DNA from: Lama guanicoe
Lineage: Eukaryota
Direction of reading: 5' to 3'
NCBI GenBank assembly: GCA_013239625.1
Contig: MU057102.1
Coordinates: 3,159,713 to 3,223,712, forward strand
DNA: 64,000 nucleotides
Shown: piece by piece, positions 3,559-6,500 of the stretch
Numbering within the stretch: position 1 is the first letter of the stretch
How the letters are laid out: each line of letters opens with the position of its first letter
Program-made: the position numbers and the translations under genes
Notes under the pieces: generated by a model
What the model saw: the letters and a program-made list of their open reading frames with translations, nothing else
Told to the model about the DNA's origin: nothing
Databases searched by the model: none

Positions 3559-6500
3559 CTATGGGTGGGTGGTGGGCTGTGGTCAGTGCTGCAGCCCCTG
3601 ACCCAAGCCGTCCGTCCCTGGTAGGTGGAGCGGGGCTAGCACTCACGTCAGTGGACGTCACTGTGAGGATGCGGTCCAGGTCCTCCACCAGCTGCTTGAA
3701 GGTGGGCCTCTGTGAGGGCGCGGCGTGCCAGCACTCTCTCATGATCATGTACCTGGGGGGGCGCTCAGGTAGGATCTGCCAGGAGCCTGCCCCACCGCCC
3801 CACCACCCCACCTCTCCTCAGAAACGGCCTTCCGGCCTCGGCCCCTGCCCTACCTAGGGCTGGGCTCCATGGGAGCCCAGGGATGCCGGCGGGAACCCAG
3901 AGGACAGGTGCCGAGAAGTGGGGGTGGGGTAGGGCACTCACAGGTCATGTGTGCAGTTGGCTGGCTTGTCCATGCGGTGGCCTTCTTTCAGCAGCTTGAA
4001 GAGCTCCTCCACGGGGATGCCAGGGTATGGCGAGCCCCCCAGTGTGAAGATCTCCCAGAGCAGGACCCCAAAGGACCAGCTGTGAGGGGTGGGGGTGTGG
4101 CACCGTCAGCCTGCCCTACCCTGGAACAGGCCCCGCTGGAAGGCAGGGGCGGGCTGCGGGGGCTCCCAGTGGGGCCCCGGCTCTGCTCCTGCAGCTTTCC
4201 TGACTCCTGCCTGTCCTGAAGTGGCCTGAGCCCTGCCCCCGCCCAGGGCCTGGGGGCCACATACACGTCACTCTGATGGGTGTAGACTCGGTCAAACAAG
4301 GCCTCGGGCGCCATCCACTTCACAGGGAGCCGGCCCTAGGGGGAGGAAGGGGGCATGTTGGCTGCCAGGTTCCCTCCAGGCTGGGGCCCCGACACTCCCT
4401 CCGCCAGCCGCGCTCACATTGGTGGTTTTTTTGTAGTAGTCGAGGTTGTGCACGTCGCGGGCCAGGCCAAAGTCTGCGATCTTCATCACGTTGTCCTCGG
4501 TCACCAGCACATTGCGGGCCGCCAGGTCCATGGGGTAGGGCGGGGGTGGGGCTGAAGCCAGAGGCCAGCTGCTCCCTCTGCCCCCTGCCGGGCCCTCCTG
4601 GGCCCCTGCTCTGCACCCGCCTGCCCAGCCTGTCCGGGGCCCTCCTGGGCCCCTGCTCTGCACCCGCCTGCCCAGCCTGTTCACCTTCTGCGAGGCTAGG
4701 TACTCCATGCCCCGTGCCACCTGGTAGGCGCAGGACACCAGGTCCTTGAAGGTGAGCTGCTCCTCGGGCAGCCGGCAGGTGTCGAAGGGGTAGTCCGTGC
4801 CCGGGGGCCGCCGCGCCCGCAGGTACTCCCTCAGGTTGCCCTTGGCCGCGTACTCCACCAGCACGTACAGGGGCCCTGAGAGCACAGGCACCTCAGAGGG
4901 GCCCCGCCCCAGGACCGTCCCGGCCCCCGCCCCCACCCCGGGGCCCACACCTACCGCCCTGGGTGCAGGCGCCCAGCAGGTTGATGATGTTCTTGTGTCT
5001 GCCAATCATCTTCATCATCTCCATCTCGGACACCAGGTCCGACAGGTCCTTGTCTGTGGCGTCATCTGTGAGAGGAAGGCAGGCACATGAGGCAGTGCTG
5101 CCCCACGGGTCCAGGCCCCCTCGCCCCCTCCCTCCCTCACCTTTCAGCATCTTCACCGCCACGGTGACGGGCTTCGCAGCTCGGTCTTTGTCAATGCCAA
5201 TGGCCTCCGCCATGACTACCTGGCCGAAGCAGCCTTCCCCGAGGGGCTTGCCCAGGGTCAGCCTGGCAGCAGAAGCAGAGCTGTAATGAGCACTCCCACG
5301 CGCTCAAGGACCTGTCCCAGGCCACCACCTCCAGGAAGCCCTCCTCACTTGCCCCTGTGACCTAGCTCATGACAACAAAGGACACTGCCCCTGGCCTCTT
5401 GGCCTGTGAGAGCACTTTCTTGGGGGTGGGTCCTCCCCAACTACTGGCGCCCAGCCTCCTCAACCAGAACCCAGCCCCACATCCAAGAGTGGCCACAATA
5501 GCCTTCATTCCCACGTGACTCCAGATCTGCATCCAGTCAGGTCTCAGAGGTGGCACTGCCCCCACCCTGGGACCCCCCCATCCATCTCGGACACCAGGTC
5601 CGACAGGTCCTTGTCTGTGGCGTCATCTGTGAGAGGAAGGCAGGCACATGAGGCAGTGCTGCCCCACGGGTCCAGGCCCCCTCGCCCCCTCCCTCCCTCA
5701 CCTTTCAGCATCTTCACCGCCACGGTGACGGGCTTCGCAGCTCGGTCTTTGTCAATGCCAATGGCCTCCGCCATGACTACCTGGCCGAAGCAGCCTTCCC
5801 CGAGGGGCTTGCCCAGGGTCAGCCTGGCAGCAGAAGCAGAGCTGTAATGAGCACTCCCACGCGCTCAAGGACCTGTCCCAGGCCACCACCTCCAGGAAGC
5901 CCTCCTCACTTGCCCCTGTGACCTAGCTCATGACAACAAAGGACACTGCCCCTGGCCTCTTGGCCTGTGAGAGCACTTTCTTGGGGGTGGGTCCTCCCCA
6001 ACTACTGGCGCCCAGCCTCCTCAACCAGAACCCAGCCCCACATCCAAGAGTGGCCACAATAGCCTTCATTCCCACGTGACTCCAGATCTGCATCCAGTCA
6101 GGTCTCAGAGGTGGCCCCGCCCCCACCCTGGGACCCCCCTGTGCTGTGCTCCCAGCCCCCACCTGGTGAGAACCCAGGGCCCTCACATGCCACTGACCGG
6201 GCCCGGGACAGCTCCCACTTGGGGTCGGCAGGCAGCTCGAGCTCAGAGACGTTGGCCAGCGCGGGGCCCTCCCCGGAGGACAGCCGGGCGATCCGCACCA
6301 GCGGCGTGTTGGAGCTCATGGAAGAGCTGGACTCCAGGGACACCTGCTTGGGTCAGCAAGGGCAAGTTGGTGTCTCGGGGCCGTACAGTCAGGGTGAGGG
6401 TGAGGGTGCAGCCCCAGGGACGGCAGGAGGAGGATGGGCCTGGGAGGGGTGTCTGACATCCACGTGGCACTAAGTGAAGAATTTTTTAATATGCTTTTGT

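Follow-up and report, generated by a model that had tools for sequence, protein, structure and literature searches.

As assembled, the FGFR3 gene in the analyzed stretch of camelid DNA (64 kb; hereafter, the window) lacks the splice acceptor of exon 15 together with the four codons for C-I-H-R of the HRD catalytic loop. Judging from the sequence, this loss is quite likely to be a local misassembly or consensus error, with FGFR3 probably normal in the living animal. This reading is favored because the gene is otherwise intact, because the lesion has the form of a 12-to-1 replacement, and because the window has just two exact local tandem duplications, both of which are close to it.

The gene was placed on the minus strand by translation and by the location of its peptides. 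The whole FGFR3 exon set was found in the minus-strand translation, with the peptides recognized by eye: signal peptide, Ig exons, acid box, the alternative exons IIIb and IIIc, transmembrane segment, and split kinase. When exons 13, 14, and 15 were compared singly, the top matches of each were FGFR3 chains, above FGFR1, FGFR2, and FGFR4; the exon 16 peptide is identical among FGFR2, FGFR3, and FGFR4. The gene and the features at the lesion are as follows:

~17586 (start codon, MGAPAF…) to 3412 (stop codon), minus strand: FGFR3 gene.
4685–4875, minus strand: exon 14 (191 nt, with 4685–4873 in frame; ...PLYVLVEY...YLASQK), intact, with canonical AG and GT and the donor gtgaac.
4529–4684, minus strand: intron 14 as assembled (156 nt; donor gtgaac).
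4529–4553, minus strand: 3′ end of intron 14 as assembled; its pyrimidine tract is rich in C (ccccacccccgccctacccc) and ends in atg with no AG.
4418–4528, minus strand: exon 15 remnant of 37 codons (DLAARN...DFG...YYKKTTN), followed by a GT donor (gtgagc).
4265–4335, minus strand: exon 16 (24 residues), intact; the kinase numbering resumes normally past exon 15.

To map the exons one by one, the solved FGFR3 kinase chain 6lvm_A was used as the reference. Exon 13 corresponds to residues 67–102 of this chain, exon 14 to residues 104–166 (ending ...ASQK|gtgaac), and exon 16 to residues 209–230; the translation of the exon 15 remnant is identical to residues 171–207 at 37 of 37 positions. Residues 103 and 208 are unmatched merely because their codons are split across exon borders, and the sole real break is at residues 167–170. 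These are the C-I-H-R residues of the HRD catalytic loop, which are not encoded, so that D-L-A-A-R-N alone remains of C-I-H-R-D-L-A-A-R-N. We take the missing residues to be C613–R616 of human FGFR3, with the catalytic Asp617 retained. The exon 15 remnant thus holds the catalytic Asp, DFG, and the activation-loop tyrosines, and its first four codons are absent. On the minus strand, the lesion reads ...cttcagccccacccccgccctaccccatg|GACCTGGCGGCCCGCAAT..., with the GAC codon at positions 4528–4526; a longer reading is ...ggcttcagccccacccccgccctaccccatg|GACCTGGCGGCCCGCAAT.... The exon 15 acceptor, ...ctaccccatg|GAC, is noncanonical. A preliminary description of this DNA had claimed that the acceptor AG and the His and Arg of HRD are missing, and this is borne out by the exon mapping: exon 14 stops at 4685, and coding resumes at 4528 with DLAARN. 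The 20-mer expected for the missing piece, searched with up to three mismatches, does not occur anywhere in the 64-kb window, and therefore, the piece has not been moved elsewhere within it.

The shape of the lesion was assessed by comparison with the same region in relatives. Three word searches, with window frames that extend from exon 14 across to intron 15, returned hundreds of vertebrate genomic open reading frames (ORFs); same-species sequence was not among these ORFs, and the best identity was 73%–79% over intron parts. Every inspected ORF from other vertebrates that reaches the exon border reads …Q|CIHRDLAARN. The three frames of the relatives at this position are …PQCIHRD, …VHPQGPG…, and …PSASTGTWRPA…, which together imply that the DNA there is CCAG|TGCATCCACAGGGACC. 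The window has CCA-T-GGACC, that is, 12 nt replaced by 1, and the resulting net loss of 11 nt agrees with the loss of about 11 nt given in the preliminary description. As far as can be read from the implied sequence of the relatives, a single contiguous deletion cannot yield such a 12-to-1 replacement.

Splicing does not appear to offer a way around the lesion. Upstream of the Asp codon, the nearest AG is found 23 nt away at 4553/4552, in the wrong frame; both the position and the phase are as claimed earlier, and splicing to the AG at 4552 would read 16 residues and then a stop. In-frame AGs farther upstream (4659, 4599, and 4596) were considered and rejected: their use would add 22–43 intron-encoded residues, with HRD still absent. 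A U12-type intron was also rejected, given that intron 14 has no U12-type ends. Intron 14 has no stop codon in the phase that it shares with exons 14 and 15, and its retention would keep the frame but give no HRD.

An open, in-phase intron 14 of FGFR3 is found in several other mammals too (proteins P0121, P0122, P0123, P0125, P0127, and P0225). Gene callers working on the genomic contigs of those mammals take exons 14 and 15 and the intron between them for a single ORF, and retention would insert 27–41 residues just before the catalytic loop. The open intron is probably a by-product of its being short and G+C-rich.

The remainder of the gene is well preserved. All FGFR3 splice boundaries that were read are canonical GT/AG, the exon 15 acceptor excepted (the boundaries of exon 5 were not placed exactly), and the remaining coding exons are in frame and show no sign of decay and no other disabling change, which matches the earlier claim that the rest of FGFR3 is intact. 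The other catalytic motifs are kept, namely, the VAVK lysine (VTVAVKMLK, exon 12) and DFG and YYKK in the exon 15 remnant. The kinase exons are 94%–100% identical to the human protein (94%–97% for exons 13 and 14), and on this sequence comparison, FGFR3 is, or until very recently was, under selection. Likewise, the identity of the 37 remaining exon 15 residues to human FGFR3 implies purifying selection on the kinase until now.

This conservation bears on the idea that the lesion reflects a fixed, lineage-wide loss of the FGFR3 kinase, tied, for example, to the long limbs and neck of camelids. The attraction of this idea is an analogy of phenotype, in that FGFR3 loss leads to skeletal overgrowth (PMC4526732). 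Had the loss been an older one, selection on the rest of the kinase would have been relaxed. The exon 15 remnant, however, matches human residue for residue, exons 13 and 14 have diverged by only a few percent, and all other splice sites read are intact. Moreover, FGFR3 null animals are also deaf and kyphoscoliotic (PMC4526732), and part of the transcript is still present in the RNA runs described below. Because the rest of the kinase is intact and conserved, a fixed loss is effectively excluded.

The same observations make it very improbable that the window contains a second, nonfunctional copy or a misplaced haplotype piece of FGFR3, with the working gene located elsewhere. False and true gene duplications do occur in draft assemblies (PMC9516828), but a decaying copy should carry more damage than is seen here: all introns and both the IIIb and IIIc exons are present, and no other exon is disabled.

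Two residues in the kinase exons differ from all relatives inspected. Exon 14 has DYPFD in place of DYSFD at 4790–4800, and exon 13 has MIGRHKN in place of MIGKHKN at about 5000; these changes may be lineage-specific substitutions or further consensus errors. The window also includes three N runs, at 2029–2160 (132 nt), 22726–22881 (156 nt), and 22902–23033 (132 nt). Some 1.3 kb separate the first of them from the FGFR3 stop codon, on its downstream side, which probably places this run within the 3′ UTR or close to it. When the stop-free segments at 18500–64000, upstream of FGFR3, were screened crudely, no clear coding exon emerged, and TACC3 was not recognized there.

The lesion has two neighbors of an unusual kind, both of which had been pointed out in the preliminary description as local duplications and are real in the sequence:

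4590–4680: intron 14 repeat, in which a 44-nt unit recurs exactly at 47-nt spacing (X + 3 nt + X); the lesion is 61 nt away.
5020–6141: 561-bp tandem duplication; the copied segment runs from the 3′ part of intron 11 through exon 12 and intron 12 into the first 46 nt of exon 13.

The two 561-bp copies meet at 5580/5581, a junction within exon 13 (GAGATGGA|TGGGGGGG...). As assembled, the gene would have exon 12 twice, along with half of an exon 13 that has no donor. Two mismatches (6118/6116 versus 5557/5555), ~25 nt from the junction, distinguish the copies, as does one extra G in the G run at the junction. The junctions of both duplications are therefore untidy, the 44-nt repeat having a 3-nt filler and the 561-bp copy its two mismatches and extra G. 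The 47 nt gained through the repeat and the 11 nt lost at the lesion sum to a change of 36 nt, a multiple of three, and hence, the assembled intron 14 is in phase with both exons. Without the 44-nt repeat, intron 14 would be ~110 nt long, within the 81–123 nt range of the read-through ORFs of other mammals.

A repeat search of the whole 64-kb window found only these two exact local tandem duplications, both within 1.6 kb of the lesion. The probability of such clustering by chance is ~0.003, a rough uniform estimate of our own that was not computed by a tool. That three junctions so rare and untidy should fall within 1.6 kb, in a window of 64 kb, points to one local cause. Just one further tandem repeat of note is present, at 37296–37362; it consists of a 34-nt unit present twice with 96% identity and looks like an ordinary minisatellite-type repeat.

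If this cause is an assembly artefact, it could have been a single local fault, such as a gap filled wrongly, overlapping contigs left unmerged, or a change from one merged assembly to another. Both the intron 14 repeat (44/47 nt) and the 561-bp duplication, with its exon 12 and half exon 13, would also stem from this fault, and reads would be expected to back none of the three anomalies. The true FGFR3 would then carry the usual ...cag|TGC ATC CAC AGG GAC... junction and a working kinase. The predicted genomic junction is cag|TGCATCCACAGG, with 11 nt more at 4528/4529, and the predicted exon 14-15 junction in the transcript is ...CAGAAG|TGCATCCACAGGGAC. The preliminary description already leaned toward an artefact. 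The intact gene, the complex form of the lesion, and the clustering all fit this leaning, which stands as an interpretation and falls short of a demonstration.

Errors of this type have precedents. In older vertebrate assemblies, 26%–60% of genes have at least one false loss, and false indels occur preferentially where G+C is high (PMC9516821). The sequence that joins false duplications often lacks read support and stems from gaps having been filled wrongly (PMC9516828). The published references for South American camelids were built either from short reads with SOAPdenovo or as a meta-assembly that includes long reads at 8X (PMC7331169, PMC6598621). The false losses and duplications of Kim et al. 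2022 (PMC9516821) and Ko et al. 2022 (PMC9516828) resemble the FGFR3 case in that a junction and a few codons are lost in G+C-rich sequence while the gene is otherwise intact. Similarly, the “depth-gaps” from incorrect gap filling in those studies resemble the exact tandem duplications here, with a few odd bases at the junctions. Unlike those cases, however, the FGFR3 duplications have no N gap between the copies. Furthermore, the published cases were shown by read mapping and a better assembly of the same animal, whereas the FGFR3 case is inferred from one assembly. The lesion does not exceed the remainder of the gene in local G+C content (0.63–0.69), so that G+C alone does not explain why just these 1.6 kb are affected. 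Should the assembly be a modern, high-accuracy long-read one, the prior for such an error is much lower.

Sequencing runs and sequence collections were searched as well. In 14 DNA runs, 0.78–0.89 of the sampled words of 2200–5010 were present, compared to 0.26–0.28 in five RNA runs. These runs bear five organism labels of close kin, three of them within one study from 2020, in keeping with a South American camelid. No DNA run exceeded 0.89, and nine samples from three studies all fell at 0.88–0.89. This ceiling is compatible with the presence of words private to the assembly and fits a systematic drop-out of G+C-rich words equally well, being a figure that is not specific to the junctions. Exact-pattern scans of metagenome contigs gave no match, either for a pattern spanning the lesion junction with a gap of 0–20 nt or for the exon 15/intron 15 border. 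In an exact look-up of 10 ATG-started ORFs from the window, none of the three that span an anomaly and none of the seven controls were in the collection. A literature search on FGFR3 in alpaca or camelids found nothing relevant.

The main competitor of the artefact interpretation is a real private or rare loss-of-function FGFR3 allele, probably heterozygous, that was taken into the haploid consensus; we consider it unlikely. The lesion is, after all, present in the assembled sequence itself, and an intact remaining gene is expected of a young allele. Clustered junctions with nearby point changes are a signature of replication-based complex rearrangements, and the clustered, untidy junctions observed here fit such an event too. 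In one variant of this explanation, a single complex replication-based event could have produced both duplicated segments (561 bp and 44/47 nt) along with the 12-to-1 replacement. Splicing of exon 14 to the AG at 4552 would then add 23 nt and lead to a stop, with the message degraded or the protein kinase-dead. [quoted passage not shown] A carrier may well have been picked for sequencing. Nevertheless, the prior is low, given that a rare complex event would have had to strike a highly constrained gene in the one animal that was assembled. Assembly defects are by far the more frequent source of untidy junctions in three separate places, and no run contained more than the above ceiling of words, although that figure does not single out the junction.

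The consequences of FGFR3 loss are well established. The preliminary description had stated that HRD is essential and that loss of FGFR3 results in skeletal overgrowth, as in the mouse knockout, human CATSHL syndrome, and ovine spider lamb syndrome, and the literature agrees (PMC4526732, PMC8678120). The alleles of ovine spider lamb syndrome (V700E), human CATSHL (R621H and T546K), and the Fgfr3-/- mouse all hit the tyrosine kinase domain, as does the lesion described here, and the predicted effect of the lesion, if real, is the same as that of those alleles, a dead kinase. In human FGFR3 numbering, R621H of CATSHL lies in the same catalytic loop, five residues after the missing Arg. The difference is that the known natural FGFR3 alleles are single missense changes in affected animals or families, whereas here, a splice site and four codons are lost with two duplications in cis, in one assembly with no phenotype attached.

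The practical meaning of the lesion depends on its origin. Should it be an artefact, FGFR3 models predicted from this assembly will be wrong or absent, gene-loss or selection scans of the species would wrongly call the FGFR3 kinase dead, and the 1.6 kb from 4528 to 6141 deserve a flag for correction. It is improbable that the camelid reference animal carries a complex FGFR3 null in which the exon 12-13 duplication is joined to the repeat in intron 14 and to an exon 15 without its acceptor and C-I-H-R. If it does, this allele would be the camelid counterpart of the ovine spider-lamb allele and could raise the frame size of carriers, with skeletal overgrowth and deafness in homozygotes. Such a natural FGFR3 null in a livestock species would be testable for stature and hearing and would be relevant to breeding in the same way as the spider-lamb allele in sheep.
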